Source of the DNA: Podarcis tiliguerta
Lineage: Eukaryota
Assembly (NCBI GenBank): GCA_965153285.1
Contig: OZ229115.1
Length of the DNA stretch: 64,000 nt
Direction: 5' to 3' (one strand)
Shown here: positions 12,740 through 49,488 of the stretch, in pieces
How positions within the stretch are numbered: the stretch's first letter is position 1
Layout: each line of letters opens with the position of its first letter
Position numbers and translations under genes: made by a program
The notes under the pieces: model-generated
What the model saw: the letters and a program-made list of their open reading frames with translations, nothing else
Told to the model about the DNA's origin: nothing
The model's database searches: none

Positions 12740-12964
<225 letters not shown>

Positions 12965-14674: not shown

Positions 14675-14986
<312 letters not shown>

Positions 14987-15088
14987 TAGAAGGAAGAATT
15001 TAGAGAGGATGAAGGTTTGGAAATGCCAGTAGTCATGCCTAGACTGCTCTTTGCAGATTAGCGAAACAAAAAAGAATTTCAAAAACTA

Positions 15089-15257
15089 CCGTATTTTTCA
15101 CTCTATAACACGCACCCGGCCATAACACGCACGTAGTTTTTAGAGGGGGGAAATCTGTAGGCATGCCACCCGTAGGCATTCCCTCCATAACACGCACAGA
15201 CATTTCCCCTTACTTTTTAGGAGGAAAAAAGTGAGTGTTATGGTGCAAAAAATACGG
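15089..15257. mobile_element. Tc1/mariner-type MITE in ATP6V0B intron 7
   Basis: TIR CCGTATTTTT / AAAAATACGG flanked by TA on both sides; internal ATAACACGCAC subrepeats. Confidence 0.85.
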
Positions 15258-15908: not shown

Positions 15909-15935
15909 GTGTCTAAAGTGAAAATGGGCGACTAA
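15909..15935 (+). CDS. ATP6V0B: ATP6V0B exon 8 coding part (VSKVKMGD*)
   Basis: Long polypyrimidine tract then GCAG; TAA stop. Confidence 0.95.
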   Translation: MSKVKMGD

Positions 15936-16241
15936 GCCCTTTGCCACCAGCCTGTCTGCCAGCTGCAGACTCTGTACATATTTATTTAATGTCTTCTGTT
16001 GGCTTGGGATGGAGCTTGGTGTATAAATTTATTCCCGTGATCTTTCCCTGCAAGGCCGTGGAAGAACCTGACCAATTGATGTGTGTGTGAGAAAGAATCT
16101 GTCCTCCTTTCCTTCCATCCTTTCCTGCTCCACTTCCCCTGAAAGAAGGGGCTGGATGGACCTAGGAGAAGGAGCCTAGAGTCTTCCAGCCCTTGCACTC
16201 TTTGTGGCAACCACTGCCAACAGCAATGCCATGTTCTGTGA

Positions 16242-16247
16242 AATAAA
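16242..16247 (+). terminator. Probable ATP6V0B polyadenylation signal
   Basis: First AATAAA about 300 nt after the stop; U/GU-rich sequence downstream. Confidence 0.7.
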
Positions 16248-16889
16248 CTCATCCGTGTCCCAAGTAGTTTCCCTTCCTTGTGCGCCCCGTGCTGCTGTGC
16301 CCCTCCTGCTACCCCGGCTCCTGCTGCCTCCCACAGTCCACATTTTCTGGAACAGCCAGTGGTACTGGCTGAAGATTTGGCTCTGCAGGCTATGGGAGGT
16401 GCCCTCCTAGGCACATCTGTTCCATACTGAAGGGGTGCATAGGAGCTAAAAGTTGTGATTTTTTGAGTTCCCTGAAACTTCACAAATGATTGGTTAATTA
16501 AAATTAATTATGGGAAATGTCTTGTACTGTGATTAATAGTTGCTGTTTCTCTGTGGTGTGCCTGCTGTTCATCAAACTGCTCAATGCAGGGGTGGGCAAA
16601 CTTCAGGTTTATCTGATTGTCTTTGTTTCTTTAACTGGAATGCAAAATCTACTAACCAGGGGCAAAATATAGATTTATTTTTTTTTAGAAGGGGTTCCTC
16701 TGAGCCCATTTTGAATCGTAGGAATTGGTTTTCAGTAGTAGAACGGAGCTCATAGTCCTTTTGCCCAAGTCTTCTCCTGCGTAACTTTCATCATTTCAGC
16801 GGCCAAATTTAGATGGGAAAGATCATTTTGTTATTTCCTTTAGTTGAAAAGCCCTGCTGATTGATTGCAAATCACTCAGCGGTTTGATA

Positions 16890-16975
16890 GAGCCTGTGAG
16901 GTAGGTGCAAAGGCTGTAACTGGCCCAAGGTCACCCAGTGAGCTTCATGACTTGAGTGGGGATTTGAACCCTGAA
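16890..16975 (-). mobile_element. Truncated MIR/Squam3-like SINE
   Basis: CCTGTGAGGTAGG...GGCCCAAGGTCACCCAG...GGGATTTGAACCC (core plus B box in reverse). Confidence 0.6.
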
Positions 16976-19900
16976 GTTTTAAAGTGTTGTAAACTTTAAG
17001 GGTTTTTTTCCTTTATAATGTGGTATAGAAATGAAATTAATCATCATCAACATCATCCCTGAGAAAGAAAATGAGACCTGGACATTCCATTGTGGCAGCC
17101 ACAACCTAGGTTTAAATTACCATTTAGCGATTAGCGTATATATCTGAGTTTCTACACTGGACGCCCATGGATTGGAGGTTCCCTCTCCCAGGGTAAAGAG
17201 TATTCCTGCTACCTCTTCCCAGGGGTGGGTAGTTTTGCAGTCCTAGGACCATGAAGCATATTAATTTACAAAACTGTATTTGTATCCTATCTTGGGAGTT
17301 GCCAAAGGCAGCTTTCAGTTAAAGCAAAACTTAGCTGAAAATTAGAAGCCAGAGAGTCACATTGCAGAAGGGGAAACACTTCTTATGGTAGGATGAATCT
17401 AAAGATCTTATAGCTTAAGCCCTGAGCAGGATTTGCCATCTGTAATCCAATCCCATGCCAGCCTTACCTGGTAACTGTAAGGGTGGGAGGAAAGAGCTGG
17501 ATTCCAGGCAGCAAAATTTGTTATTTTCCCTGCAAAGTTTAGATAGTCAAATGGGGGGGGGGGGTTATTGTGATATATTCTTATTTTAAGGAATATATAA
17601 ACTCCTAAAAAAAGAAAACTGATTCTGTTTGTTTGTTATTTCATTATTTACAGCAAGTCTTCACTGTTCTGATTGGCTCAGTGCTTTTGGAGAGCAACAG
17701 AGCTGTGCTTATTTTTCTACAGGAACTTAAAAAATTATGTGGCAGGGTGTTTAGTGTCACCTTTTGGGTTCCTTGCTGGGACAGAGCCCCACCCCGGGAG
17801 ATTTCCTGAAACACTTTTGACAACTGTATATTTAGCCTCTTTTCCACGTTTCCCACTACTCTGAGTAAAAACACTTGAATTTACATGTGTGAGCCATTCT
17901 GCTGTTTGTTCTGAAGGCAAAGATGTTCCTTTGGGACACTCTTGGCACTTCTCAATGACATAACTGGTGTTCATCTAAATAAAGCTTTTAAGAACATTGC
18001 TAGTGGGGCAAGATCTGACCCATATAAGCTAGAGCAGGGCTACCAGATGGGGTTGCATGTTCCCTTGCTCTCCATAATTTGATTGTCAAACTGTAGCTTT
18101 ATCAGCATGTGGTTATAAAAGTCATCAAAGGATAGAGAACATCATCTTTATGTTGATGATACCCCAATGCTCTCTCATAGCCTGACTGAAATGGATTCAT
18201 TTAGTGTTTAAAAAATGATGTAGGTCAGGTGGTGGAAGAAGCCCTCCAGTAAATGGCTCTGTCAAGGACGTTTCCTTCAGTTTAGATCTGTACATGTTTT
18301 GATAGCTAGATGTGATGGCTTGTGTATATTTAGAGGACATAGAGCCTCAAATTTCATTTCAGCTTGATAACTGACAAGCCTAACATCTTGCTGTGGGGCA
18401 AAACGGATTTCAAAAGACAAACATTGTTTTGTCTAGTGCCACATACATTCTTTCCTGGTGATGTATTTACAAAATCTTTCCTATTTAAAACATATAGGAC
18501 TATAACAATATGTCCAGAATAGCCTTAACACAAACTGGAGTTGCTATAGATGGGGATGAGGGATTTATTTTCCTAACCTTTAACCTGCGCTACAAGACTT
18601 ACCTGCTTTTGAATGCAGCCCGGTGGTCCCTACACAACATTTCTTAAGCACTGAGATATGTAGAACAAGTCTCTTCAAAGTCTGCATCTCAGTTACTTGT
18701 GATGGCTTCGTTTGCCTGCAGTTCATACTCTTAATGTTCTTCTCATTGTGATTGCAGCTCGGGGGGGCTTTTCTTTACATGGATAATAACTCAAAATTTG
18801 ACCTGTACACGTAACCTCAGGTCCTTGATTTTGCATACCCCACTTCTGTGTATTTAAACACAGTCATTGGGTGAGCAGTCAGTATCACAAGATGAATCTT
18901 GATCCAAACAAAACACCTACATTCTGATTGTCATATGTGAAATCATAGTAGCTGTCACTGTTCCAAGAAATGGGCTAGTTTGGCTTTATTCTCATTGGAA
19001 ATATGCTGGAGAAGTTGTGAGGGTTCCTTCAGATCAGGACAGGTTGCTGTTCTGTGGCATGAGTAGGGCCTGCTACACTGTAGCTCCACATTCCCCCCCT
19101 CAAAACATGTTGTGGTTACTGCCTTGAGGTGGCTTATCTTGCAGAGGCATAACCCTGGCAAGCCCATTGCTTTTTAGGAACTTTACACTGGCCTTGCGTG
19201 TTTCTGTGCTGCAGATAATTCTCTCTATTTAACAAATGTGTGTCCTGCCCTGTCTGCTATGTGCCAGGCTGATGGTAATAAAAGCTTAAAAGAAGAACAG
19301 ATTCCGACTAGTGAGCAATGGAAGTGGTAGCACAATCAAATGCTTGAAAATAAAAACAGCAGCAAACTACAAAACACTTCAACTGATATTTAAAAGGCTG
19401 GGGGGGGGGGAAGTCTAGGAAATTAAAAGGCTATGTGCGTCACATCAAAAAGGCATTGTAGTTGGCACTAGGTGTGCTTTCTTGGGAAAGCATTCCAGTG
19501 ATGTGCTAAAATGGTGAAGGCCCCTTCTGTAGTCCCCACCTGCCACCTGCTGTGTTTTTTCCTACACTGAAATGGTGTTGCCTCCTAGCACTGTTAGGAG
19601 CTGTTGTCCTCAGGAATCTTGCCACACCATTTTTCTGAGGGTGTTTCTTTCCTTAGTGCCATGAGGTCCTGTGTCTCATGTGGATGACCTCTGAGGCGGT
19701 GCAGACTGGGCCTGAGCCTACACAAGGAGTGAAAGTGAAGTCCTCCATTTTTCCTCTCTAGGAGGCTTAAGTACAATCACTGTGCTTTTGCTGGCTTAGT
19801 GTTGGCTCCCTGGGTGATTCTGCCACATCCCTGCAAATCTGCTGTAAGATGCAGAAAATCCACTCACTTTGGATGTTTGTAGAGTGCCCGGCATAAGGAG

Positions 19901-22689
19901 CCAAGCTGGCTCATCAGACTAATGAGCTGGCAGGGATCCTTGTAGCATCGTGGGTGGGTGTTGTGGGGAGAGTCTTCCAGAATATTTGTATCCTGCCTCC
20001 CACTTAATGAGCATGCAAGTTGCTGGGTGTGGTAGGAAGGTAAAGATTACCAGATCGAGACACTAGGCTGGCATGCAAAGCTGTAAAGAAGAGCTGGGGA
20101 GCTTGACAGCTCTCACACAGAGAGAGAATAATAAACACATGAGCCCCGCAATATTGCACTGGGACTGAAGGAGCTCAGATGTGCTTGGGCAAGAATGTTG
20201 GCATGGCTTGCAGAGTGCCTGGAAGCACTGAACTCATTAGGTTACGTTACATGATAGTTGGAGGGGAAGGCTGGGTGGGGCTGGGTGGCTGAGAGGGAAG
20301 AAAAACAAAAGAAGCTCTTTGTTCAGGACTTACAGGGTTCTCCAAATTCTAGTGAGGAACAGACAATACTTCCTGATGATTCTTGAGGGCATTAGGGTGT
20401 GGAGATTTTGGAGGCTAGTGTCAATGGCACTGTCTTGGCAACAGCAGCATAGTCCTATTGGCAGAGGTTATAGTTCCCTGGAGGAAAACGTGTTTTGCAT
20501 GCAGAATGCCCCAGGTTCAATAATTAGCATTTCCAACTGAAAAGATACCAAGTGGAGAAAAAGAAGAACCTTGGACTGCCACTGCTAAGATAGACAGTGC
20601 TGTCTATTGTGAGTTCTTCCCAAGGCCTACCTGTGTAGTTGCAAGAACAGCCATTCTGAAGTGTAACATACAAACAAGTGGCATTTATTTGCTTGTCTCA
20701 GCTCAAAAATGTTCAGAGAGGGTGATGTTCCATCAGCCCTGCCATAGTTTACCCAAGTTAAAGTTCAATCCTATTTATTAAAGAAAAGGATACAGAGATG
20801 AAATAAAAAGAAAGATGCATTTGTATTAAATATATGTAACTATGACAAGTTCATCGTTCAAATTTCCTGGGCCTCTCACCACTGTTAACATGTAGCATGT
20901 CTGCCAAACCATATTCTCATTTAATGAGCTCCTCTCCTAGAATGTCCTTTATGAAGAAGGCTCGGTTCATTTCACAGTTACCTGGAAATGTATCCCAAAA
21001 GCATTCTATAGTACAGCTGGAAAGAGAAACTTTGGGAGGAAGGAGTCACAAATTGAACTGAACTGGTGGGGTGGGGGGGCGGCGGCAGACAGACAGACCA
21101 AGACAGAGAACATTTGAATGGTCCATGCCAGGTAGGAAGGTGACAGTGCACTAGCAGGCACAGGTTGGATAACAGTCTCCTAAACATATGGACATTTTGG
21201 GAAACCCTAAGCAAGTTAATACCTCGCTATAGTTGATGAGTTACATATTATGTATGCTTTATTTTTATTTATTTTGCATATTTTGATTAGTGCTGGAAAT
21301 GAAGAGCCCAAATCTCTGGTGTTAGGCACATCTATACCCTACCAAATTCCATGGGTCTGATTATGCACCCCCTTATCCAAGTGATAGCCCAAAGTTCTTA
21401 TTAATACAGAGCTTGCTTCAGGGAGAGGCAACTGCCACTTGCTGGGTTCTGTTCTACTCTAGCATGCCTAGAAGTGTGACTTCTGTGTGCCGCTTCTGTG
21501 GGCAGCATTGGCATCACCCTATCATACCTTCGGCAGCATGAATTTCCCTTGCATCTCCACTTCATTTCCAAGTTGCCTAACCAAGCACCAACATGGTGAC
21601 AGCCACATTTTACATTTCTGGCTATATAACCCTGCTGAGAGGCAGGTCCTGTGAAGCCACATTTAGTGGAAACATTCAGTTAACACTGTCCTGGGGCCTC
21701 AGCAGATGTGCTTATAAACTTGCCACCTGACCATTTATATGCCAAATTCAGAGAAGAGTGGAGAGGCATCAGGAAATGGAAGGACCTTCCCCTTTGCTTT
21801 TGCAGTACGCTAGACTTGAAAGGAATCTTAAAAGCAAGATTTTTTTTTTAATTCTATAGAGCTGCAGATTGGAAGGAGGCCCAAACTTCCTTGTTTGTTG
21901 CATTTCACCAGTTGGGCTCAGGCTCCCTGATGGTTTTTGTTACCCTAAGTAACACCATATTCTAGCTTAAAACATGGCGGGCAGGACTAGTAAGTGGCCT
22001 ATGATGAACCACAGTGCCACAGAAAATGGGTCAGGGTGGCGAGCTCTGTGGAAGGGACAGATGGGCCACCACCCTATCTCGCATGTCAAAAACTCACAAC
22101 CACAGAAAACATTAATTTTGGAATACCAACTAAATGCTCCTTCTTTTTTTGATGTGGCAACCCAACTCCTCCTGTTCGGTGTACCTTTGTAAGAGTGGGG
22201 CCTAGATTTCTGCGTGCCTGGACCCTGCGTACCTGGGAGCCCTGCTGCTAAGTTCAAAAGTGAGAAAAAGGAGTGGGCTATTTAGAAGGGAGGGAGATGC
22301 ATTCTGTATGCAGTCAAACCCGTTCCCTTGTTGCATCTTCACATGCTCCAGAGCCCACGACTGAAAACGTGTGTGTCCCATGGAGCTGAGCCCACAACGT
22401 TTAATATATGCGATTCTATTTATTTTATTTGCAATATGGTGTGTACAGTCGACATTATGGGAAAATATCATGGCGACGAACAGCATAAAATCAACAATAA
22501 CATGAGATTCACAAAACAAGTACGAAATACATCACAGATCGGCAGAGGAGGTCAATACATCGCCGGTTCAAACCTCAGGTGAGCATCATCACCACTGGGT
22601 GATGAGATTCATGCCTTGGCTGGAGTGCGTCGTGTGTGATGAATGGGTACTGCCCACCCCACCCCCTAGGATCTTCTCCTCTGATCGGG

Positions 22690-23450
22690 ACTGAGAGCCG
22701 GCGAGGAACCTGTGATCTCCACCAATCCCGAAGACGCGCTCTCCGCGTTCCCTAATCTCCCACGTGACTTCTTGGAGAGCAGCCCCCCGTCCTGTTGCAC
22801 TAAACGGGGCTGACGAGGGCGGCGGCGGAGACGGCGGCCCGGGGAGCGGGCTGGCTGGGAATGGCTGGCCGGAGCTGGCAGGGGCGGCGCTGAGCGCGCA
22901 GGAGGCGGAGCTGCCGGCGCGCCCAAGCAGGCCTGATCCGCTCCCCGGTGTGGGCGCCGCTCATCGTCCTGCCTGGGCTCCGCTGTGCTGCCCGGGATGG
23001 GGCGCAGGAGCCGCTGTTGCAGCTGGCCGGGCAGCCGCCCGCTCTGAGGCCGGGCCGGGCTGGGCTGGGGCCGGGGGAGCCGCCGCGCCGTCCCCTGAGC
23101 CGCCCGGCCCGGGCGCCGAGAGACAGCGGCACCACGAGCGCACGGCGCGGCCGGGAACGAGCAGGCGGTGAGCTGGAGCGAGCGGGGCCGAGCCGGGGAG
23201 GGAGTCCGCTGCTCGGGCGCGGGGAGCCCAGAGGGGCTGCACCCATCGCGGGCGGGCGGGCGGGTGGGCGAAGAGAGAGACCCTGCCTTTGCGGCCGCCA
23301 GCCTCCTTTTGTTGTGGAGAAGGGGCCGGGTGTGTTCCCAGCAGGTCCTCCTCACACGGCTCCTCTCGGCGCCTCCATCACCTGCACCCACCTCCGGGGT
23401 TCAGGGGCGCATCCCCAGGCGGGGCGCTTCCCCCGGCACCTCAGCCATGT
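22690..23450 (+). promoter_or_regulatory. CpG-island promoter and non-coding exon 1 of B4GALT2 (exon ends at 23167)
   Basis: Very CpG/GC-rich; CCAAT 22722-22726; CACGTGAC 22761-22768; donor GCG|GTGAGC at 23168. Confidence 0.75.
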
Positions 23451-25429
23451 TTCGTCTGATCACCCACTCCTGGGCAAACTGGGTATTGTGTGGACCGATG
23501 GGCTTGGGCATAGGTGTGTCGAGAGGCGCGGATGGATGCTCTCGCGTGTACCAGTTCTCGTTGGTGTGCAGCGTAGATGCGTGTCTCTAGATAACAGTTG
23601 TGCACGGATGTCTGTTTACAAGCAGGTACGTGGGCGAGAGTAAAGGTGTGCCTCTGGCTGTCTGTCTGCGCGTATCTCTAGGATGCTGGCACTTGAGCCC
23701 CTCCTCCAGCCAGCCTCGCTCCCCCTCCCCCAAGATGGCTCCTGCACAATCCCCAAGGCGCTTCTTCGAGCAGAGAAAGGCTGGGGCTGTGTCTGGGCCG
23801 CCTGGGAATTGGGGAGGGGGGCGCTCTGGCACCTGCTGCACAAGCTTGTTCTCAGCCCCTCCGCCTCTGGGCCGGATCACTTTTGAGGTTCTTCTACCCG
23901 TTTGAGGTTCCTGACAAGACGGGGGATTTCCTGTTCCAGGCAGGGGGATCCGTGGAGAAACAATGTAGCCTTTCTCTTAGGAAAAGGGAAGGGGCAGCTG
24001 CTTTTAGGAACGAGGGGCCTCACAGCCAAGGCAGCCCAGGCAGAAAATAATGGAGCTTGTATATGTTTACCAGGCTGTGTGCTCTGTGTGAAACAGAATG
24101 GCCTTGTTGCTGTCTTTTGGATCAGTTTTGCCAAAAAAGAAGAAGAGAGGAATAAACACACACACAACAGCAACCCTTGGCTGGCATCCACTTACCTTTC
24201 CCAGAGCTTCCCCATGAGCTTCTCTTCAGCCAACTGGTTTTGTTGCCCCTTGGGAGCCCATATGGGACTAGGGGCTAGCGCTATATATAGCCTAGAAATG
24301 TGTGTGCCTGGGAAGCAGGGGGCTCTGTGCTGCCTGTGCCTTCCTGCAGGCACCATTTACGAATGTTTCACTTTCCTGTTTTCACAGATAGGTAGATAGG
24401 TAACTTTCCAAAACAGGTAACTGTTAGGGATGCTTATGCCAAGTCAGGTCAGCAAGGAACATTATTGACCCGAGACTATGTTTTCTGACTCCAGTTAAAA
24501 CCTGGATATTTTTTAATGCCCACAAATTGTATAAACATTGGTGTCTGCTCTCTGGTGATCATCAGGCAGAAGACAAGACTGAATTTCCAGATAAATTATT
24601 CACAGCCAAGGAGCAGCCCAGCTGCAGTCTGGCTCCATTAGTGGATTGTTAACATTGCAAAAGCCCATCTCTCCAGCTTTGCTAACTTGTATTTTGCACA
24701 GCTTGCCTGCACTCTGTTTGTACAATGGGATATCCAGCTACATACTTAATCGAGGGGAAAGGAATGGAGAGACTCCTGTGAGGGAAAACACAGGCAGACC
24801 TGGGATGCCATCTCATTTAAGAGGCTGCTGTAGATAATATCCTAGGAATAAGATGGTGGCTAATGGGCTCCTGCAATGTGTACTAGCTTCACAAATAGTC
24901 TTTCTTGCCCCAGAGATGAGCTGTCTCTGACACACGGGCCAAGTTGCCACTTAAGCAGTTTCTGACTTCTGCCTCTGTTTCTCATCCTCTTGTGTGAGAG
25001 GAGGCCAGGGGTTTTCTTGAATGCAGTGGATGTAGGTTGGCAAAGGAAGTATCTGAGGATGAACTCGGGGACCAGCAAAGCTCCTGGGAGGAGATAATTA
25101 TATTCCTTTGGCACCCACTCCACTAGCCAGAGTGCAGCAAAGCCACAATTTTGAAGGAATTACATGATGGACCACAACTTTACCAGACCCAGCTAGCATG
25201 TGCCATCTAGGGCTGTTTGGGAGTTATAGTTCAAAACTTTGGAGGGTGCTATGTTGACAAGGGCTGCTTTAGGACAAGAGACATCAGGTTGACAGGTAAA
25301 ACATAGTGGTTCTAGGGATGCCAATGTGTATCCACATATTCTGTTTTGAGATATTTTGTTCCTTAAGAGGAGCCATCTTATTGTGAACAAGGATGTGTCT
25401 GGACTGGTTTTCTTAATCTTCAGGTTCCC

Positions 25430-33449: not shown

Positions 33450-33541
33450 AAGAGAGAGGGCGGCCAGCTGCATCAGGTAAGAAAGAGTAAGAGGGTCGTG
33501 GCAGTTGATGTGACCCCGCCCTTCATTATCTTTCCATACAG

Positions 33542-33732
33542 TTTGGTGAAGACACCTTTAACCGAGCTAAGCTGTTGAATGTGGGCTTCCTAGAAGCCCT
33601 TCGAGATGATGAGAGCTATGACTGCTTCATCTTCAGCGACGTTGACCTGGTGCCCATGGATGACCGGAATCTCTATCGCTGTTATGACCAACCCCGGCAC
33701 TTTGCTGTTGCCATGGATAAGTTTGGCTTCCG
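33542..33732 (+). CDS. B4GALT2: B4GALT2 coding exon 3 (DVD motif)
   Basis: FGEDTFNRAKLLNVGF...FSDVDLVPMDDRN...DKFGF; 191 nt. Confidence 0.97.
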
Positions 33733-35365
33733 GTGAGTTTGTGCACTTTGATCTTTTTTGAGATGCCAGTGGCCCCTTGAAATTGTTCAGAGTGTCAGAG
33801 GCAAAATGGAAGGAGGAATATATGACTTTATTGCACACATATGTGCTCTCATTCTGTGTTGGCTTGGACCTTGTGGGGACCTGCAAGCTGTGAAATGTGT
33901 TTCTTATCTAGATTGCAGTACAGGAACCTCCCCCATTCTTAAGACTACCATGTCCCATTTCTTCATAATTTGCAGGGTTTTTGTACTTAAAAGTGGGAAT
34001 ATACAACAGCTTTGGATCAATCCCCAGCCAAAGCAGGGTGCTTTGCAGGGATTCTGGGATGGTCCGAGACAAAGTGGAACCTCTTCAGGGATCCAGAGAC
34101 AAAATGGGGATTTCCCAAAGTGCCTCATGGCACCGTGACAACTCTGACAATTGTCTGCTGAAACCAAAACTAATGTAGCTAACTTTAGCAGAAGGGGTGT
34201 GGAATGGCTGAAGTAGAAAAGTAGAACAAATGCCAGGGTAATTGGGGGGGGGTGAATTCTGCTGTGACTGACAGGTCAAGCTTGTAGCCAGAGGGAATGA
34301 GTTCACCTGGAGTCTTCAACCCCAGTGCTTTGTGGGGAGGAAAGGAAATCCCTTTTAGTTCTGTCCCCTGAACCCCAAGATCAACTTTAAAAGTCCCTAG
34401 TTCACAAAAATTGAACCAATTTGTCTGCCATTGGCAAGTTTCATACCTAGGGAAACTTCTTTCATGTCTGCTTTCCGAACAATTGCCCTCAAAAGACATG
34501 GGAAGTTTAAGTGGACACTTTTTACCCCTCCCAAACTGTGAAGGCTGTCCTTGTGGGAAAACCAATGAAGCTATCGTTCAGAAATTTGACAGGATTCATC
34601 TTTCTTGGAGACTCTGATGCCTGCAAATTTCATCCAATAGTGGGGGAGGGGGAAAGGTTTCCTTAGAAAAATAACCATCAAATTTCAAAGGTACCTGACA
34701 GAAAAAATCCCCACCCTGGAATTATTTGGCTGGCTGAATCTGCTGTGGAGCGGCTAATGTGCCTGCAAATTTTATCCACTGTAAAAAGGGGGAAAGGTAT
34801 AGCTTAAAAAACAACAACAACCCAATAGTGAATGAGGGGAAATGAAATCTTGTTTTTCCCCAACTCAGAAGCACTTGGGACTTAGGCATGTTGTTTTCTG
34901 AAGTACTGACTCAAGGTCCAAACTGAATCTTCTGTTTGGTGCACACCCCTAATTTAAACTTTGCTGCCTCTTATATTAGATGAAATGCTCCAGGGAAGTC
35001 CTTGTGATACTACATTATGGAATGGGCGCTTGCAAAACCTATATGAAGGTGATGTAAACAAGCAGACAGGATGCCCACGTGAATGTTCTGTGTTGCCTAT
35101 ATTCTTACCTGCCAAACATGGCAAAAGGAGATGGAGGAGGTATAGTGTGTATAAAATGGAATCCTGCATTCCAGCTAAGGAGAAGGGAAATGGGAAGGAT
35201 TTAGGAGAGACCTGATGCAGTGGGAGCAATGGGTTGCCATCACATGGCTGATTTGGAAACTGGGATTTAGACTGTGTCAGGTGTAGCTTGGACCACCCAG
35301 GTTCTGTGCTCCTGAACCCATTCGTGGCTTGACTGATTCCCATCTCTCCTGCTTGTCCTCTGCAG

Positions 35366-35488
35366 GCTGCCATACTCTGGCTACTTCGGAGGTGTCTCTG
35401 GCCTGAGCAAGACACAGTTTCTGAAGATCAATGGCTTCCCTAACGAGTACTGGGGCTGGGGTGGGGAAGATGACGACATCTTTAACCG
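35366..35488 (+). CDS. B4GALT2: B4GALT2 coding exon 4 (WGWGGEDDD)
   Basis: LPYSGYFGGVSGLSK...WGWGGEDDDIFN; 123 nt. Confidence 0.97.
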
Positions 35489-35897
35489 GTGCGTGAGAGG
35501 CTGGGCCAAGCCTAGCCAGAACTTGTTCTCTGCAAGTTGGTTGTAGTAGCCATGTAGTCTGTTTTTCCATGTGGTGTCTCCTGGGAATGTGCTGAGTGGC
35601 AGGGAACAGCATTCTCTTCTGGGGTGGGGTAGCTGTGCAAATGGCAGGTGGCAATATGCAACACCTGCCTTTTCTATAACAATGCTCCCAAATCTGAGAG
35701 AGGAGGACATAGGCAGGTAGGTATTCCACAGCACATAACAATCAGGGCCAAATAGCAGGCCTGGGGAGCCAATACTCTGAAAGCCAGAAGGGGTTGGGGG
35801 TGCTGAGGACTGGAGGGTGAGGACTAACTCCTGCTTTATTTAGAGTTTGCCCCCGACCTGTCTGCTGATCTTTGAGCTGCACTTTTTCTTTGCACAG

Positions 35898-38890: not shown

Positions 38891-39143
38891 GTTTCAAAAC
38901 TTGGGAGACTCCTTGCCTATGGGATTCAGGTGGGGTCTGTGGATAGAGGTAACACTGCAGGTTTATGCAATCTATCTTGGCAAGGTACAAAATTAAGAAT
39001 TAAATTCGTTTCCAAATGAATGGCACCTCATTGTGCTTCCCCACCAAGTTTGTTTAAAGCAGGGAGTGGGTTTTCTGGCCCAGGAAACTCTGGGCGTAGT
39101 TACTCAGCCCAGAAGACAAGAGAGAACTCTTCTACAAGGTTCT

Positions 39144-39149
39144 TTTATT
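39144..39149 (-). terminator. Probable polyadenylation signal of the VWC gene
   Basis: TTTATT on + (AATAAA on -), about 470 nt past the stop. Confidence 0.65.
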
Positions 39150-39617
39150 GATGCTCACACACAGAGAAAAACTGTTAAATAGTAGCAAAAGATGCTATGT
39201 TTAGTTGAAGTTGGAGTGGGAATGTGGTGGTGGTTGGTGGGTGATTCCCTAAATCAAATGGGGAACCTCTAGCTTTCAAGATGTGGCTAAATTATTTCTA
39301 ACCATTAGCCATGCTGGCTACAGCTGATGGGAGCTGGGAATCCAACTATATCTGAATGGCCACAGGTTGCCCACCCATCCTAAATAAAATGGGCTTTCTC
39401 ATATGAGCTACTCCCCTGTGTAATAACTCTAGACATTGTCAAGGGAAAGGGGGTAGACCTGGAAAGGGGTCTGGGACTGGCAATTGCTTATGTGTATGGT
39501 TGAAGGAGTTGGGCCAGGGCTGGGTGTAAGGGCACACTAAGGCTTGTCTGGATAAGCAGAAGCCTTGCAGGTGCTGAAGAATGGCTGGCCCAGGAATTGT
39601 TTGGTGTTTGGAGCAGC

Positions 39618-39802
39618 TCAGGTGTGATGTGCACCTGTAGCCCGGCATCCCCGTAGCCGCTCGCATTTAGCTAAGCGGTTTCCTTCCCAGTAACCGGCGT
39701 CCTGGCCATCATGACAGCGGCAACGGGTGCAGGGCCCCACCCATATGCTCTCCCCAGCAGGAATTACGCGTCGCTGGCTCCCATCCACGTAGCAGTTGGG
39801 CC
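39618..39802 (-). CDS. VWC2-like gene coding exon 3
   Basis: GPNCYVDGSQRRVIPAGESIWVGPCTRCRCHDG...CERLRGCRATGAHHT then TGA; acceptor CTCCACAG. Confidence 0.92.
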
Positions 39803-40343
39803 CTGTGGAGAGACATGTCCATGTATTAGAGTCTGCCATTGTTTGCAGAAGTCTCATCATGACTCTTAGAAGCAGAAATGGCAAGCAGTTTAAGAGTACA
39901 TGTGTAGGTGGGGGCAACCCAGCCAGATGGGCGGGGTATAAATAATAAAATTATAAATTATTACTCCAGCCTTGCACCCCATCCTCGACCGGGAGCTCAC
40001 CTAGTGCCTGTTCGTCCACAGGTTCTGTGCTAGAGGCTGCTTTTGTACCAGGAGGACATTTTTCATTTTGGGGGGAGCCTCTCTTCTAACACTAGGGCTA
40101 AACACCTGTCAAATCCTTCAAGATGAGGTGGGGCTACCAGGTGTCCCCGCCATCATTTCTAAGTAGGAAGCTTCCTGTTCAGTTAAGCAAGCTTGTGTCT
40201 GGTCAGCTTGGCCCAATTCCTCTCACTTCCCAGCTCCATTAGGACAGGGGCCCTGAACAGCGAGGGAGACAAAGTTCTCTCCCCCTTCTGAACAGCTTGA
40301 AGTGGAACATTTGTCCCTTGCTGGGAAGGTGTGTCTTTCTCAC

Positions 40344-40473
40344 CATCCTCACAGGTGGGGCAGCAGTGGCCCTTCTCGTAGACTGGATTGACGCAGGGCG
40401 GAGGGGCGCAGTCTGCCACTAGGCAACGAGCGATGCCATCTAGGTCACAGGTACACTGCTCGCACTCTGAGGG
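40344..40473 (-). CDS. VWC2-like gene coding exon 2
   Basis: PSECEQCTCDLDGIARCLVADCAPPPCVNPVYEKGHCCPTCED; acceptor CTCTCACAG, donor GTGAGA; 130 nt. Confidence 0.93.
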
Positions 40474-43113
40474 CTGTGAGAGACAAAGACTGGTCAATAG
40501 AGCAAGGCAGCTTTACGTGGACAGCACACAGTTATGATGATGATGATGCAGCTCCAGAACTATTTTGCATCAGTGGTGCAGAAGCTAATTCTTTTCTGAG
40601 AATTGCATTCCCTTGGGAATCTGTTCAGAATTGCATGCCAGTGGTGTGCTGCTCCAGAGTCAAAGTGGGTAGGGCACCTTCTCTGCTACCCTGTTTCCCT
40701 TCCCCTTTTCCTCCTAATGAAATTAGGCTCAGAGAAATAGGTTACCCATCCATCCGACACCACCATGTTGCAGAATTGACTGGATTTTTGCTGTTCCAGA
40801 TTGAATTAGTCATGTCTTCTGTCTGTAATTTGCAAAGAGATGTGCGTATGCAAGCAGGTGGGGAACTCATGCCTCAGATACTTAATTAGATTAGGCTCCT
40901 GCCTGCATCTTTGCTTACCTGTATCTGTGCTTTAAGTAACAGAGGAAGGGGTGATCACAAGAGACATATAAGGCCCACCATCTTCCTTTTTTTTGTAATG
41001 TGTGAAGAAGCATTCCAAACTGAATGCATAGCCATGGCAGTACTGGGATTATACCATCAGATGGCACTATCAACCAAGAATTGATAGATAATGAGGGAGA
41101 AAAAGCTTCTGTCCCAATCTCCCTTGATTTTGCGTATCTTGTCAGCTCTGGCCAACTCAAGATTACTCTCAAATAATCATGCGGCTGGCCACTGGGGAAA
41201 CTGACTGATCATAAGAAAATGTTGAATAGAGAAAACTGTGAGTGAGTGAGAGATCGTCCTCAGTAGCGCAGAACCATCAGGAATCCCAATATGCTAAAAA
41301 GGCCCATGAATGTGTTTTGGAACCCATTAACCAATCAAGCTCCTCCTTAAAATATCCAGCAAAGGATACTGAAGTCATTTTCAGCACCTCACCTCTCATT
41401 CACCTTCTTACTTGCAAAACATGAGGCTAATTCTAGCCAAGCCACATGCTTTTGTTCTCTGCCCTAAGGGGAAAGTTCCAAGATTCTACCTTCTGTCAAA
41501 TTCCCTCCCTCCTGAACTAATAGGTTGGTTGTCTGATTTCACACCTTCAGGGTGGGTGATGATAAAGACTGGGCTCCACTGAAGTTCAAGTGGTTGCAAA
41601 TAAAAACATTGGTCACTTGCTCTAGATCACTCGTCACAATACTTTAAAATAACAAAGCTGGAAGATGACATCAACATTTAACACCAAAAATCATATCTTA
41701 ATGATATAATTGTCCATGATCATCTTTATAACTCCAGGGAAGGAGATTGCACAACTTCACTGGCAAGTTGATATCTTGTTCTTACTACAAACTTACAGTA
41801 CAAAGGAAAGTGCTTACCCTTCCTAATTACAGAACTTTTCTCTCTCTAGATCTATAGCACTTGTCTTGCTTGTAAGCAAATGCAAGATAACCTACCGGTA
41901 GTTCCAGGAAGTGTTGGGAAGCAGCCCTATATTACTGTATCCACAACCCAGATGTTCTGGACCTAGAGCAAAATCTGGCCATCCCTAGTAAAGAACTGTG
42001 AAGGTTTGGGTGAGCAAAGTATTTTAGGGCAAATTAGGCCCCAGCTGAATGGTTCTGGATAATCAAAAGCTTGCTTGCTATTTTATGATATTTTGGTTGG
42101 CCATAATAAAGTTATTATTTGGGGGGAAATTATGGCTCAGTATGGTTTTGCAGAAAGCAGTTACTTTCTGTGTACCTTTCAATAGAATTTTGTGTTTGGG
42201 TAAATGGGACAGGCCAATAGATAAGTCATCAAAACGACACACAATAATTTGATGTTTAGGTAACAGACAATTCACCTAGGAAGAACTCCACTGCCCATTC
42301 TTTGACTATATGTAGCAACTGGTCCTTTCTTCATCAATACACTTTTTTTTTTTGCAAACACTCAATTCATGCTGTCCAAAGAGGCATGGAGCCCAGAAAT
42401 GGAGGGCTTTGATCTTCCACCTGCAGCCTCAGGGCCAGAATTTGACTCCCTTCGGCTAGTGCAGGCTTAGTGCCAAAAATACTCCTTTCCCCACCCACCC
42501 TCAATTGTCCAAGTCAGCCATGCTAGAGATTGTTTGGTCTGACTCAAGTCCTAAAATAAACTACACACATTTTTGGCAGCAACAGACAATAGCCAGAAGC
42601 AAGGTGCTGAACTGGTCAATGTCAGGCCTAAGAAATGGATGAAAATGAAATTCAGTTAGTCAAAGGATGCTCAGCTAGGTAGTACAGCCAATAAAATTGC
42701 CTTCTGAATTATCAAAGAGCTTTGGTTTTATGGGAACATCTTAAGAGCACCTCCAGCTTCATAGTGCACTTTTGATTTGGTGCTTCTCGCCCACTTTGGA
42801 AAAATGCAATTTATTAGTTTTGTTTGAATTTTCTTTTCCTTCAGCCAGTAACGAACAAACTATAAAGACACAGCCAGCATTCCTGCTTCCAGTCTCTTAC
42901 TCTCCTGCCTAGGCCTCCCTTTCAGAACAAGATTTAAGAAACAAAAGTGACGGCTTGCGATTCTTAGACAGTGCCTTTTTCAGGAGCATTCGCCTTTTCT
43001 CCTGCTTTTGAATATCCTCACTTTGCCATCCATCACATATTCAGCCCTGCCCACCTCGCTCTAGATTTCTTCTCATGCCACCCCTTTGCCTAATTGTCCC
43101 GTGAATGCCTTAC

Positions 43114-43461
43114 CTGGAAATGCTGCCCCAGCTCATACACTTGTCCACGGTGCTCACAGCCAACCCTTTCGCAGCGTGGACAGCAGTCGCTGGGGTAGTG
43201 GCTGACGTGAATGCAGGCAGGTGGCAGAGCGGTGCAGTCCGTGCGGGCGCAGGCGGGCCCCTCCGCTGTGCACTCGCACTGGGTGCAGTGGTCACTGTCC
43301 AGGAAATACCACTCCCCAACGTAGTACAGGCTCCCGTTGGCATCGCACGTGGTCACTGGCCCGGCCAGTCCTGGGATGGGCACCAGAGTCAGCAGCAGCG
43401 CTAAGCTCAGCTGTGCCAACGGAAAGGGCATCGCTGAACTCGAGGGACAGATGCCGGGCAT
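43114..43461 (-). CDS. VWC2-like gene coding exon 1 (signal peptide, VWC1, start of VWC2)
   Basis: MPFPLAQLSLALLLTLVPIPGLAG-PVTTCDANGSLYYVGEWYF...CTQCEC...CCPRC...LGQHFQ; donor GTAAGG; start ATG ambiguous (43461 or 43431). Confidence 0.9.
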
Positions 43462-43469
43462 GGGAGTTG

Positions 43470-44410
43470 GCGAGAGGGAGGAGCAGAGCAGCAGCAGCAG
43501 TAGGGAAGCGAAGCGGAGGAGAGCTGGCGGGGAAAGTGGGCATCCAGTCTGCCCCAACGCCGCCTGCGGGGTACCGCCGGGAGGTTGCCTGCTGAAGCTG
43601 CGGCTAAGAACCGCCCTGGCGCGCCTCGGCCTTTGTGCAGCCGCCGCCCGGCCCGGCCCGCCCCTTCTTGCAACCCGAGCCCGCCCAGGGGCACAGCACC
43701 CCCTCCCCAACGGAGCGGGCGGGACCGGGGCGGTGGGAGGGACCTGGCCCCCTATCTGCACCTCAGGAAAAGCCTGCTAAGAAAAGTCTGCTGTGCTCCC
43801 TCTCCAAACCCCTCGAACACTCATCCGGGGAGCGAATGCTGCGTCTCCCCAGTTCCCAGTCTCCGCGGCCTCCAAAACACGCGCGGCGCTGGATCTCTCC
43901 CCCCCCCCCCCCGCCGCCCCTCTTATTCCTAGGAACATTAATGGGCAAAGAAATAAGTTTCTCAATACTGTACTGTTGGCCAAAGCGTAAAGCCAGTGGA
44001 ACCCCTCCCGGATGAAAACTGGCCGACGTGTGGCTTCTCTTTACCTCCGATTGCTTGGGTGCAAGCGCGGGCGCGCCAAGAGCGTCAACGCACACGTTTC
44101 CTTCCCCCAGGACCCCCGTCTCCACGCTCGACCGACATCCTGTCTGCCTCGTGGGCACGGCTCCTTTAAGAGGCGAGGCTTCAGAGGAACGCGGCGGGGC
44201 GTTTCCATGGAGACGGCGAGTTTATATTCCTGAGAGTTAGAGGGTGGAGGGGGCTCGGCTAGGGCAAGACGCCTGGCCCTCCGCCCCTCCGCCCGGTGTC
44301 GCAGGTGAGGGCTACCGCAGAGTTATGCCCGTGAGTCCGTAGGGAGTGAGGAAGTGTGGGGAGAGTAAAAGGTCTGGGGCGGAAGTGGGCTCGGTGGGCC
44401 GAGACGTAGG
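43470..44410. promoter_or_regulatory. Bidirectional CpG-island promoter (VWC2-like gene / CCDC24); CCDC24 non-coding exon 1 ends at 44304
   Basis: CpG-rich region between divergent genes; GC boxes near 44280-44293; donor CAG|GTGAGG at 44305. Confidence 0.75.
44201..44214. promoter_or_regulatory. RFX X-box
   Basis: GTTTCCATGGAGAC, a near-palindromic 14-mer matching the RFX consensus, just upstream of CCDC24 exon 1. Confidence 0.7.
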
Positions 44411-45795: not shown

Positions 45796-47548
45796 GTTAA
45801 GTACCGAAATACTGGATCTCCTATTCAAAATGATTCACAAAAGAGCAGAACAAACAAACAAACCACCCCTCTTATTACACAATTTAGAAGTGGCTGGTGA
45901 CAAAGGGATATCTGAATAAAGCATCAAATCTAGGTCTCATCAGCTAAAGGGGCAGCACTAATTTTGCAAGGGGATTTGACTGATGAAAGGGCCCGCCTTT
46001 CGTGTCTATAGATTGAGTGGAGTGGACTGAGTGCTAAAATTGAGTGGAGCTGAGGGGGGCTTATAAATTGTATTAAGCCCCCTTCCACTGAGCACTGGCC
46101 ACTAGTTTTGGCATACATGCATTTTCATATAGAGTAGTATTCATGTCTTTGATAATCTTGTATGGAGAAAACTTCTGGTTTGCCACTTACATCTGCTTTG
46201 AGTGCTGTTTAATTTCAGTGAAAGGAAATCATATCTGAGAAGGCAAGTCAAGGAGGGGATAAAATATTGCAACCACCCCCTCCCTGTTTGACAAGGTCCC
46301 CCGATTGCCAGCTCCCAGCTCAGCTGGTTCCTAATGCTTGGCCAGAGCCCCTAATCCATGCTATCCCAGGCCCTTTGTTCTCCTCCAGCCATTCATGCCC
46401 TTTCTTTATTCAGCATGGTCCTGACTGCAGCTGAGAAGAACAGTAAACATCCCAGAGGCTTTTCACATGGTAATTGCCTTACCTCCTCCTGAAACCAGAA
46501 AAGCAAGCACAGCACACCCTGACAAGATGGCACCTTTTTCACTCTATCACTTCTTCATGTTAGAGCTTTGCTTGAGATCCAGCCCCCCCCCAACATTGTG
46601 ACCAGTGACCCCCTCCCCAGCCTTTATGGGGTCTTTCACCTGGCTGTCTATTACCTCTTCATCACAAGCCTGATAAATGTGGCCCAGGTACTGCCTGTCT
46701 CCCTGCTGTGTTCTTGTATGTGTCTCTGCTCCCCTCCCCAATTGGATATCCGAGAGGCCGCCCAGGGAAGCAGCTGTACCATAACGTTCCTCTTGTGGAT
46801 GTGTGGGGCCAGAAAGGGAGTTCTGGCGCTTGCTTGCCTTACAAATATCCTGCAGATATTTTTGCGGCATGACCTTGACTTTCCTCATGGGGGGAGGGAG
46901 AGAATGATTGTGGGTGGGCTGTCTGCAGCTTTGCACCTTTTATGGAGTGTACAGACAGCAACAATGCAGTGCCCTCTTGCCAATTACATTGGAATGACAG
47001 TGTCCTGGCTGGTGTTCTTTGCCCACTTTCTGCGAAAGGTTTTTTTTAAAAAAACCTAAAAACTTCACTCTTAATCCTAAAATACTCTTCACATAAACTA
47101 ATAGCCTCATAGTCTGTTCCCAGTCTTTGGGGACATGCAACGTTTTACTGAATTCAGTGTGCTCTCACACACATTTATCACATCTGAGGCATCTTTTATT
47201 CCCTTGATGCATGACATACTTCCGAAAAGTTGTCAGTTCCCTGACTGTGGCCTTTATGAAATGTAATTGTCTACCATCAGGTGAGTAATTAACCCATGGC
47301 TAGGTATTGGTTTTCTTTTCTTGCAGGCAGGCACCTGGCTTGATTTCCAGGTTTGCAGAATAGCAATACTGGGAATGGGAGTGCAACTTGTATTTTTAGG
47401 TTTTGTCAGTGCTTTATCATTTGGGGAGGTGGAGGGTGGGGGAAAGGTAACTTTGAGAAAGTTATTGCAGTTTGTGTCAATGTGCACATGTGTGAATTTC
47501 TGCATGTGGCTATGCACTAATGCAGTCCAACCCCTTCCCTATTTACAG

Positions 47549-47733
47549 GTGCGGACACTGTTGGAATTCCATCAGGAGTTGCAGTCAGGCCGCCTTGGAG
47601 TGGAACAAAGCCCACTGCAAGCAGCTGACAGCTGGGCCTTGCTGGCAGCTCCCCCCAACCTCAAGGAGCTGGTGAGGGAGGAGATCCGCCTTCTTCTAAT
47701 TGGCCTACAGCAGAAGGCATCGCAGGAGGGCAG
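47549..47733 (+). CDS. CCDC24: CCDC24 coding exon 2
   Basis: VRTLLEFHQE...LLAAPPNLKELVREEIRLLLIGLQQKASQEG; AG/GT boundaries. Confidence 0.92.
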
Positions 47734-49488
47734 GTACTGGAGATTGGAAGAGAAGGGACTTGAGATAATTAAGGGCTGAGTTGAGGGGGAGCAGATAGTA
47801 GGGATAGAAGAAAAGCAAGCAGAATATATTAAGACCTGAAGCCTATTCAATATAAGAATGAGCCCATTAGTTTCCAACTGATGTGGCTGGTGGCATTTAT
47901 GTGTGCGGAATGGGTGAGTTTTATATCATCTTTTGGCCAAAGCAGTCTAGATTGAGGAAGCCATAACTATTTGTTATGAGAGGCTTAGAATTTCATGGGA
48001 CAAATCAGTTAGGAGGCTAGACAATAACTTGATTGTCTCTCTTAACAAGAACAGGATGGGGGAAACCTCTGATTCCACTCAGATATAAATAAGTCCAGTG
48101 CCACCTAGTGACTAAACTATATATTTACACTATTGACACAGTATTCTTTCTCCCTTTGCCTTCTAAGGGTGACTGTTCCAGAAATGCTTACTAGGAAATA
48201 TCAGCTCCAATGCAATTTAATTTGAAGTTCCAGTATAGTTTCAACATGATTGCCACTCAGATGGCCAATGTCCAGCAAAAATAACCTGTGCCAAACATAT
48301 GTTTGCACCATACACCTCCATCTGTAACTTGCGCTCCCCATTCAAGTGCAGCTTGTCAGTTTGTGTGTCTCTCTAGTCTTTATCTGTAGAATTAATTCCA
48401 GCCTTACATTCCTATTCTTTGGGTCTCAATCATATAGCCTTTGTCATTCCCACTTAGCTCCCTTACATCATGCAGGAATCGCATTGCTGAGCGCCTCTAT
48501 CAAGAATGCCAGTCCTGCTAGTGGGTTTGTTTTTTATGGTGTGTTCAGCCCGTAGCCTGAGGCTGGGATTATGTCCCACCTCCAAGTTCAAAGTGAGCAT
48601 TCATCCGAGTGAGCACTGGGATCAGCACCTGCTGGAACCCTTGCCTGAGGATTTGCTCTCTGCCTTAGCCCTGTGTAACCAACGAATAGCTCAGTGAAGG
48701 CACGGATTAGAACAGGCTGGCTAGTAAGGGATGAGCTCTCAAACTCCTCATGCTGGAGTTGTTTGTACCATGTTGCCATATCAGAGAATCCCTTCACACC
48801 CTTCAAACCTTTCTACTATCTCTGTCACAACCTGAAATTCTGCATTTGTTACTTACTTTCAAATAGCTCCCCTCTTGTTGAATTGACATGAGCACAGGTC
48901 ATGGCTCCCTGTGTGCTGCCTAGAACTGGGTCCAATGAATGGCCTGAGGGCTGCATGTAGCCCTCAAGGCCTGTTTTGTTGGCCCTGGGCAACATTTGAC
49001 ACCCTCCCCAGCCCTCATGCTGCCTTCCCAAAGCCAGATAAGCAAGGCACTAGGCTTAGCGAAGGAGGTGTAAAGGATCTGGCAGGGTCCTAGAGTCCTC
49101 CTGTCTCCTGCCCAAAGCCTAATTACTGCTTCCCTGGAGTGCTCTAGGACTCTCCCAAAGCCCGTTGTCTCACTTAGCTGGCTTTGGGAAGGCAGGGCAA
49201 GGACTGGGGGGTGGCATCAAATTTTTGCCTCAGTCTCCCCACTGCACAATACAGTATGTGTTCTCTTGGTTCTGTGTCAAACTACTTTTGTGGTCTACTT
49301 GGTATGGAAAATTGGACCTCACTGGGCTCTTTAGTCTAGCTTGTTTTTCCTTTTAAGCTTCTATGCATTCCAGCTACTGGGTGGTTTTGTGACCCAGCAC
49401 TGCCACCAACTGGTCTTCTCTTGTCCTTGTCATCCCAAAGACTGGGGATGAACAATTGCCTTATGGTTGTACGTTTTCTGCTTCACAG

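Follow-up and report, generated by a model that had tools for sequence, protein, structure and literature searches.

The window, a 64,000-nucleotide stretch of contig OZ229115.1 from the lizard Podarcis tiliguerta, contained a three-exon gene on the minus strand at 39618-43461, with a stop-free frame and two GT-AG introns. The gene lay between a beta-1,4-galactosyltransferase (B4GALT) gene and CCDC24, as a first-pass annotation of this DNA had proposed, and both neighbours were recognised by Pfam matches. The features of the locus were as follows:

33509-33733 and 35337-35543, plus strand: B4GALT exons, tail-to-tail with the VWC gene (Glyco_transf_7N, E 9e-21; Glyco_transf_7C, E 7e-22)
39126..39617, minus strand: probable 3′ UTR (AATAAA at 39149-39144 on the minus strand)
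39618..39802, minus strand: exon 3 coding sequence including the stop, 6-Cys C-terminal domain (translation, Pfam VWC2L_C)
39803..40343, minus strand: intron 2, 541 nt, GT..AG (contig joint skips 541 nt, four runs)
40344..40473, minus strand: exon 2, the rest of VWC domain 2 (CxxCxC ... CCPxC; translation, Pfam VWC2L_2nd)
40474..43113, minus strand: intron 1, 2640 nt, GT..AG (RNA joint 40473>43114 skips 2640 nt)
43114..43431, minus strand: exon 1 coding sequence from the conserved ATG, with the putative signal peptide, an NGS sequon, the complete VWC1, and the start and first Cys of the second VWC domain
43432..43461, minus strand: ten-codon in-frame upstream extension with a second ATG at 43461, the start of the RefSeq model (220 aa); lacertids only
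47285..47776, plus strand: CCDC24 exon, arranged head-to-head with the VWC gene, a GC-rich stretch lying between the two (PF15669, E 2.1e-10)

The exon 1 donor GT was at 43113-43112, and introns 1 and 2 were in phases 0 and 1, respectively. Counted from the conserved ATG at 43431, at which squamate models outside the lacertids begin in our alignment, the product has 210 aa, and from the upstream ATG at 43461 it has 220 aa. Contigs covering exon 3 extended 164-175 nt below 39300 and stopped near 39126-39136, although contigs cannot prove an RNA end. Intron 2 contained a fragment of a high-copy repeat (39909-39957), and depth over 39888-40034 reached 7,000-25,000. The galactosyltransferase neighbour was taken as B4GALT2 from its position only, since Pfam scans of the further long ORFs of the window recovered no additional parts of B4GALT2 or CCDC24; these long-ORF scans likewise gave no Pfam match to ATP6V0B/DPH2 at the window start.

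Architecture, splicing and constraint

The encoded protein comprised two VWC domains of 10 Cys each and a tail with six more, giving 26 Cys in total. Searches were run exon by exon, while the full-length alignment, tree, and fold analyses used the RefSeq protein XP_053248665.1, which is identical to the exon products. All three Pfam models specific to VWC2L, which define the VWC2L-like (brorin) protein family (PF23333, PF23334, and PF23331), were matched, one per exon, placing the protein in that family: VWC2L_1st in exon 1 (E 1.5e-14, 54.1 bits against a cut-off of 27), VWC2L_2nd in exon 2 (E 4.7e-10, 40 bits against a cut-off of 27), and VWC2L_C in exon 3 (E 2.1e-17, 63.2 bits, above the curated cut-off). 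The first 15 profile positions of VWC2L_2nd were encoded by exon 1, and the Cys spacing in exon 3 (C..CxxCxC..C..C) resembled that of the first six Cys of a VWC domain. At the N-terminus, a hydrophobic run (LSLALLLTLV) followed by PGLAG was judged by eye to be a putative signal peptide, a region of low pLDDT. The NGS sequon was retained in most orthologues and was absent from those of turtles and Chiloscyllium. Read from its sequence, the mature product would thus be a secreted, N-glycosylated protein of ~185 residues, with two VWC domains and a half-VWC-like C-terminal domain.

Contigs from four runs (X1, X5, X6, and X13), representing two related organisms, had the exons joined precisely where the gene model predicts. 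In all four the intron 1 joint ended in CT..AC on the plus strand, and the contigs had an exon depth 20-60 times that of the introns. None of these runs is recorded as RNA, and they were guessed to be so; the spliced joints are themselves evidence of their RNA origin, and the contigs carry neither expression level nor strand. Constraint on the coding sequence was evident at two scales. An alignment of 37 orthologues that span sharks to lizards showed each of the 26 Cys, and about 75 columns, to be invariant, with an identity of 63-72% over that distance. Within run X1, exon 3 showed a single, synonymous difference in 185 nt; the 3′ UTR had 10 differences in 318 nt, and intron 2 had 26 in about 540 nt. 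Indels in the signal-peptide region were multiples of three. The gene is therefore intact, transcribed, and under purifying selection, and we hold it practically certain that it is real and expressed.

Orthology and taxonomic range

The exon products were 100% identical to XP_053248665.1, annotated as "VWC2-like" in Podarcis raffonei, so the gene already exists as an automated model, just as had been guessed from the DNA. The zebrafish protein zgc:113531 / LOC541359 (NP_001013504.2) was about 68% identical and belonged to the same orthology group and the same 90% cluster family. Three motifs of this group (GEWYFLDSD, PSECEQCTC, and GYWEGNR) were invariant or nearly so in 37 members. Word searches, first with exon 1 and afterwards with an orthologue of full length, returned members of the zgc:113531 clade only and no true VWC2 or VWC2L; the paralogues were reached via a full HMMER search and a profile of brorin-type representatives. 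Two matches of 37% identity proved to be intron-retaining calls of the same fish gene. The proteins of this group are uncharacterised automated or clone-derived models labelled 'VWC2-like', and no searchable paper studies zgc:113531 / LOC541359 or its relative si:dkey-283b1.7.

In the phylogenetic reconstruction, the lizard gene was placed in a supported zgc:113531 clade (97/97), separated from all brorin-type genes, including those of cyclostomes, by a branch with 100/99 support and a length of 2.11. AU tests rejected a union of this clade with VWC2L (p 1.2e-4) as well as with VWC2 (p 7.9e-4), and the si:dkey-283b1.7 group was recovered as sister of VWC2 (100/97). We thus consider it very probable that the lizard gene belongs to a separate orthology group, and the claim that it is a separately retained family member, not an orthologue of either brorin, was borne out. 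The same annotation had called it a third brorin paralogue; its standing as an old, separate member of the family holds, while the ranking does not, since the zgc:113531 group is sister of the whole brorin-type group and not a sibling of VWC2 and VWC2L alone, and a further paralogue exists in si:dkey-283b1.7. The zgc:113531 lineage would have split off before the VWC2, VWC2L, and fish si:dkey-283b1.7 lineages radiated in early vertebrates; whether this happened before or after the tunicates diverged is uncertain, as the tree is rooted by two long outgroup branches only (Ciona and one further sequence).

Members of the zgc:113531 group were present in cartilaginous fishes, ray-finned fishes, lungfish, amphibians, turtles, tuatara, and squamates. 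Among the group's matches, which cover annotated and predicted proteins only, there were no mammal, bird, or crocodilian names; the same databases returned many mammalian VWC2L, and the sequence comparisons took in no human sequences. We judge the gene to be probably truly absent from mammals. That it is missing there, as had been suggested, agrees with the lack of mammalian names, but mammals are not the sole apparent loss because bird and crocodilian names are absent too. A single divergent fragment (P0180) nevertheless shows that GC-rich copies which escaped annotation may exist somewhere. In a more far-reaching reading, which we regard as possible but rather doubtful, a VWC lineage parted from the brorins ahead of both vertebrate genome duplications and survives only in the zgc:113531-type gene, which kept the ancestral CxxCxC in VWC1, has a ligand or receptor specificity unlike that of brorins, and was lost independently in mammals and archosaurs. 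If so, fishes, amphibians, and non-avian reptiles would have an extracellular signalling modulator of their own that has gone unrecognised.

Two readings would deny the gene this separate status. The database name suggests nothing more than a lizard orthologue of VWC2L or VWC2, and the names are indeed 'VWC2-like' throughout and all three VWC2L Pfam models match; the tree and AU tests nevertheless refute this, the protein is just 35-40% or so identical to VWC2 and VWC2L, and a true VWC2L occurs together with this gene in Anolis, Varanus, Chrysemys, Pristis, and Danio. Co-occurrence extended to VWC2 in Leptobrachium, and single species also carried the gene alongside the si:dkey-283b1.7 paralogue. 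The other reading, that the copy is decaying or without function or that the annotation is an artefact, draws on the automated name and the empty literature, beyond which nothing favouring decay was found, and it is contradicted by the open frame, canonical splice sites, invariant Cys, and spliced contigs in four runs, and by a coding sequence far more conserved than the UTR or introns. We consider either of these readings extremely improbable.

Proposed function and significance

The overall best explanation is that the gene encodes an intact, secreted VWC protein of its own orthology group, predicted to modulate BMP signalling (probability roughly 0.8). By analogy with known VWC proteins, its most likely role is that of an extracellular BMP-binding modulator: the VWC domains would bind BMP/GDF-type ligands outside the cell and hide the surfaces to which receptors bind, as happens with brorin, brorin-like, and the VWC1 of Crossveinless-2 (CV2). 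Brorin and brorin-like have been reported as BMP antagonists (PMC5407822). The AF2 model (pLDDT 84.9) matched tandem VWC proteins and single VWC domains, including that of the CV2 VWC1-BMP-2 complex, and a profile of the zgc:113531 clade run against all PDB sequences found CV2 VWC1 only (E 7e-4). VWC proteins that do not inhibit BMP (NELL, CCN, and collagen IIA) were equal or better fold matches to the model. For the narrower proposition that the protein is a BMP binder or antagonist, we give approximately even odds.

Two further readings accept a secreted VWC protein and differ on what it does. Its main role might lie outside BMP antagonism, as part of the extracellular AMPA-receptor/Noelin network, to which VWC2 and VWC2L are reported to belong, or as a ligand of another receptor in the manner of NELL-type proteins. 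A review counts brorin as one of the AMPA-receptor auxiliary proteins (PMC6502786), VWC2L bound CD36 in a receptor screen (PMC9578707), and the best fold matches to our model were the tandem VWC structures of NEL/NELL2; yet the zgc:113531 clade lacks the N-terminal DYRGKGC region common to all brorin-type proteins, so partners specific to brorins need not carry over, and we regard this role as unlikely. Somewhat less likely still is a BMP binder whose effect, like that of Crossveinless-2/BMPER or KCP, is positive or depends on context, and which is not a plain antagonist. Such a role is suggested by CV2 VWC1 being the sole PDB sequence match of the clade profile, and by the retention in the clade's VWC1 of the canonical CxxCxC, which brorins changed to CPCxC; the match is, however, weak at the E-value given above. 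Moreover, the pro-BMP activity of CV2 involves domains that are absent from the zgc:113531-type protein, which counts against a positive modulator.

BMP antagonists, like VWC proteins, take part in shaping the nervous system and the skeleton during development. Within this setting, the zgc:113531 group constitutes a deep, strongly conserved lineage, apparently without members in mammals and birds, that has been hidden under the shared label 'VWC2-like', and it needs a distinct name in annotation to guard against wrong orthology transfer. Since mammals have commonly lost members of gene families, the finding is useful and not surprising. Work on brorins assumes a two-gene family (PMC5407822); our trees show at least four genes of the family in gnathostomes. 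Knock-down and knock-out of brorins in zebrafish and Xenopus may suffer from redundancy with zgc:113531 and si:dkey-283b1.7, and the zgc:113531-type gene should be covered when BMP regulation is compared across regenerating lizards, amphibians, and fishes.

Comparison with known VWC proteins

The closest characterised systems are VWC2 (brorin) and VWC2L (brorin-like), secreted neural BMP antagonists of the chordin family that have a signal peptide, putative in the lizard protein, and share with it two 10-Cys VWC domains and the C-terminal Cys domain specific to the family. The three-exon structure, the domains, the 6-Cys tail, and the sequon recognised at first pass were all recovered by translation, Pfam, and spliced contigs, and the lizard protein shares with both brorins the motifs V(A/S)DC..P.CVNPVYE, CCP.C, and GPNC...IPAG. 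It differs from them in having no acidic linker and no DYRGKGC motif and, as had also been seen at first pass (there as FDDYRGKGC), in its distinct VWC1, with CxxCxC in place of the brorin CPCxC. Additionally, it carries the NGS sequon after the first Cys, unlike VWC2 and VWC2L, and its C1-C2 stretch comprises 20 residues versus 17 in these proteins. Its tail had been credited with a distinctive insert, which does not stand as a large feature: the C4-C5 loop has 16 residues, only two more than the 14 of VWC2, cyclostome, and Ciona proteins, and it is VWC2L, in tetrapods and teleosts, that carries a deletion (10 residues). The B4GALT-CCDC24 locus likewise differs from those of VWC2 and VWC2L, which the first-pass annotation placed at human 7p12 and 2q34, with human B4GALT2 and CCDC24 next to each other. 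Neither the marks of VWC2L orthologues (membership of that clade, FDDYRGKGC, and CPCxC in VWC1) nor those of VWC2 orthologues (membership of that clade, a long acidic N-terminal region, and PDYRGKGC) were found in the lizard protein.

In contrast, zgc:113531 / LOC541359 and the RefSeq 'VWC2-like' models, from fishes to squamates, showed no structural difference from it. The si:dkey-283b1.7 group ('D' clade; rays, lungfish, gar, and teleosts) is similarly without mammalian names and is labelled 'VWC2-like' or 'brorin-like'; unlike the lizard gene, its members are true brorin-type: they carry DYRGKWC and CPCxC, and their tail departs from the 6-Cys pattern. Beyond the family, the VWC1 of Crossveinless-2/BMPER (PDB 3BK3, with BMP-2; 2MBK), a large multi-domain protein with five VWC domains as well as VWD/TIL domains, was about 22% identical; it matched the VWC1 of the zgc:113531 clade, the one part of the protein to hit a solved structure by sequence (E 7e-4 to 1e-3), and the AF2 model of the lizard-type protein in fold, with a TM of 0.65 on the target.

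Gene structure, neighbours and transcripts

The brorin-family gene comprised three exons on the minus strand and lay where the first-pass annotation had put it, between a B4GALT gene and CCDC24, exons of which were found on both sides. The galactosyltransferase neighbour is putatively paralogue 2 (B4GALT2), based on its position; a Pfam scan at the start of the window gave no match.

33.5 and 35.4 kb, plus strand: B4GALT-type exons, tail-to-tail with the brorin-family gene
39802-39618, minus strand: exon 3 including the stop codon, open reading frame
40473-40344, minus strand: exon 2, open reading frame
43431-43114, minus strand: exon 1 coding sequence, from the conserved ATG at 43431
43461, minus strand: second in-frame ATG, ten codons upstream, at the end of the interval first proposed for the gene
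47.3-47.8 kb, plus strand: CCDC24 exon, head-to-head with the brorin-family gene across a GC-rich stretch

Counted from the conserved ATG, the coding sequence measured 633 nt (210 aa); starting at the upstream ATG, the product would have 220 aa. Both introns were GT..AG on the coding strand, with mutually compatible phases (0, then 1). When scanned exon by exon against Pfam, each exon exceeded the curated threshold of one of three models built for the brorin family (VWC2L_1st 1.5e-14, VWC2L_2nd 4.7e-10, VWC2L_C 2.1e-17). The encoded protein is hydrophobic at its N-terminus and carries an NGS sequon directly after its first cysteine, two VWC domains of 10 cysteines each (C..CxxCxC..C..C..C..CCxxC), and a 6-cysteine tail whose spacing, C-20-CxxCxC-16-C-5-C, matches that of cysteines 1-6 in a VWC domain. 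Translation and the Pfam scan thus bore out the architecture initially read from the sequence, namely a three-exon frame with two 10-cysteine domains, the tail, and the sequon.

The gene is expressed in related organisms. Logan contigs of four small sequencing runs (X1, X5, X6, and X13) from two such organisms were placed on 39300-43700; these runs were only guessed to be RNA, and we read them as RNA because deeply covered, spliced contigs are the expected outcome of RNA sequencing, although such contigs give no tissue, strand, or level. Two joints, 39801>40343 (skipping 541) and 40473>43114 (skipping 2640), were present in 4/4 runs with CT..AC ends on the plus strand, and coincided exactly with both predicted introns. 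Exons were covered 20-60 times as deeply as introns (in X5, about 1,500 versus 24), and a single X6 contig (record 24) carried the 3′ UTR, exon 3, and exon 2. Contigs bearing exon 3 stopped near 39126-39136, just past an AATAAA (minus strand, 39149-39144), which points to a 3′ UTR some 0.5 kb long. Contigs starting at the exon 1 donor (43114) continued beyond 43700 for another 0.8-2 kb, entering the GC-rich sequence that the gene shares with CCDC24; this run-on may represent a long 5′ UTR or an upstream start or, alternatively, divergent transcripts of a bidirectional promoter that were merged by the assembler.

Coding constraint was evident even at this short evolutionary distance. X1 differed from the window at one of 185 nt in exon 3 (39696, synonymous GCC>GCT), versus 10 of 318 nt in the 3′ UTR and 26 of about 540 nt in an intron 2 contig. 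Length changes in the signal-peptide region among the relatives' contigs were +3 and +6 nt, in-frame CAG and CAGCAG insertions at 43389 falling in its Leu run, where the P. muralis protein also carries an extra Leu. An AGC-repeat length change occurred just upstream of the start codons, at 43486. At 39909-39957 in intron 2, a short AT-rich segment together with its flank formed part of a very high-copy repeat, at a contig depth of 7,000-25,000 versus 10-20 in its surroundings, and many loose contig ends before 39911 had a ...GCCGCCCAGAGTGGCT consensus in common.

Orthologues and their distribution

Searches used single exons, and full-length work the database protein XP_053248665.1 from Podarcis raffonei (P0349, "VWC2-like"), to which the three exon products were identical at 209/209 residues (100%, split codon left out) and whose exon junctions were those derived from the window. 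The gene therefore already exists as an automated model, as had been suspected. Word searches recovered orthologues, 60-94% identical, from squamates, tuatara, turtles, frogs, salamanders, caecilians, lungfish, gar, sturgeon, many teleosts, sharks, and rays, nearly all named "VWC2-like"; that of zebrafish is zgc:113531/LOC541359 (NP_001013504.2). Across an alignment of 37 orthologues, 26/26 cysteines and about 75 columns were invariant, and identity to the lizard protein remained at 65-68% even in sharks and rays. Three turtle orthologues (P0064, P0373, P0380) kept every cysteine, had the first half of VWC1 rewritten, lacked the NGS sequon and GEWYFLDSD, and were flagged in tree checks for odd amino-acid composition. 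Several further database entries (P0075, P0077, P0010, P0111) were intron-retaining read-through calls or bore transposon-derived inserts; such "proteins" make the diversity of the clade look larger in searches.

Word searches of annotated and predicted proteins yielded no mammal, bird, or crocodilian name among the orthologues, an absence of predicted proteins only, and a brorin-type profile returned many mammalian and avian VWC2L from the same database. The proposed absence from mammals thus stands at the level of predicted proteins, but is shared with birds and crocodilians. An 89-aa, Ala/Glu-rich, divergent (56% identity) exon-3-type fragment of the clade (P0180) could be an unannotated GC-rich copy from a lineage that apparently lacks the gene, and warns that GC-rich copies may be hidden from annotation.

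RefSeq contains orthologues from over a hundred species. The brorin literature consulted treats the family as two genes (PMC5407822), and in the literature searched we found no mention of zgc:113531, LOC541359, or a third or fourth brorin.

Phylogenetic position relative to VWC2 and VWC2L

True VWC2 (brorin) and VWC2L (brorin-like) were absent from the word-search matches, having too few words in common, and were reached by a full HMMER search, naming by cluster look-up, and a profile search with representatives. In the maximum-likelihood reconstruction (IQ-TREE, LG+C20+F+G4, 54 rows, 225 columns), rooted with two long-branched outgroups, one from Ciona and the other an unnamed sequence, the orthologues formed one clade (97/97), and a long branch (100/99, length 2.11) lay between it and a clade of all brorin-type genes. 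The latter comprised VWC2L (99/97), VWC2 (99/92), a fourth group of si:dkey-283b1.7 type (100/99) that was sister to VWC2 (100/97), and three lamprey/hagfish groups. Topologies joining the new clade to VWC2L or to VWC2 were rejected by AU tests (p 1.2e-4 and 7.9e-4, respectively). Moreover, the orthologue co-occurred with VWC2L in Anolis carolinensis, Varanus, Chrysemys, Pristis, and Danio, with VWC2 in Leptobrachium, and with the fourth group in Mobula, Protopterus, and Lepisosteus. Tree, tests, and co-occurrence in single species together ruled out a VWC2 or VWC2L orthologue, and the idea of a separately retained member holds; rather than a third sibling of these two genes, however, it is sister to the whole brorin-type group.

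With the tree rooted on these outgroups, this sister position places the origin of the lineage at or before the cyclostome-gnathostome ancestor, and the family counts at least four gnathostome genes. The three brorin-type gnathostome clades, (VWC2L, (VWC2, fourth group)), are compatible with two duplication rounds inside the brorin lineage, which, with a chromosomal argument from general background, suggests that the new lineage had split off earlier. The fourth group (P0148, P0231, P0250, P0253, P0254, P0281, P0233, P0251, P0277), with a DYRGKWC motif, turned up in no taxa other than rays, lungfish, gar, and teleosts, and is likewise masked by the names "VWC2-like" or "brorin-like".

Fold, putative function and comparison with brorins

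An AlphaFold2 model from a 57-row family alignment was confident (mean pLDDT 84.9, core above 90). Foldseek matched it in the PDB to tandem-VWC proteins (NEL, NELL2), to the single VWC domains of collagen IIA (TM 0.61 on target, rmsd 2.9) and CCN3, and to the Crossveinless-2 VWC1-BMP-2 complex (TM 0.65 on target). Among all PDB sequences, the clade profile matched only Crossveinless-2 VWC1 (E 7e-4 and 1e-3). BMP antagonism has been published for both brorin and brorin-like (PMC5407822), and the evidence here best fits a secreted modulator that binds BMP/GDF. Architecture, fold family, expression, and constraint are established; the protein would be secreted and bind BMP/GDF through its VWC domains, and signalling by the bound ligand would be modulated, perhaps by antagonism as in the brorins or, as a rival, in a context-dependent manner like that of Crossveinless-2. 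Other candidate roles lie in the extracellular AMPA-receptor network, as reported for brorins, or at another receptor, as for NELL-type proteins, or CD36, which has been reported for VWC2L (PMC9578707).

Neither the (F/P)DYRGKGC motif nor the acidic linker of brorin-type proteins is present in the new clade. In VWC1 it keeps the canonical CxxCxC, as does the Ciona protein, where brorin-type proteins have CPCxC. Its C1-C2 stretch in the tail spans 20 residues versus 17 in other family proteins. The C4-C5 loop has 16 residues in this clade. In VWC2 it has 14, as it does in the cyclostome and Ciona proteins, and a loop of 10 is confined to the VWC2L of tetrapods and teleosts; the tail insert originally attributed to the lizard protein is thus mainly a deletion in VWC2L.
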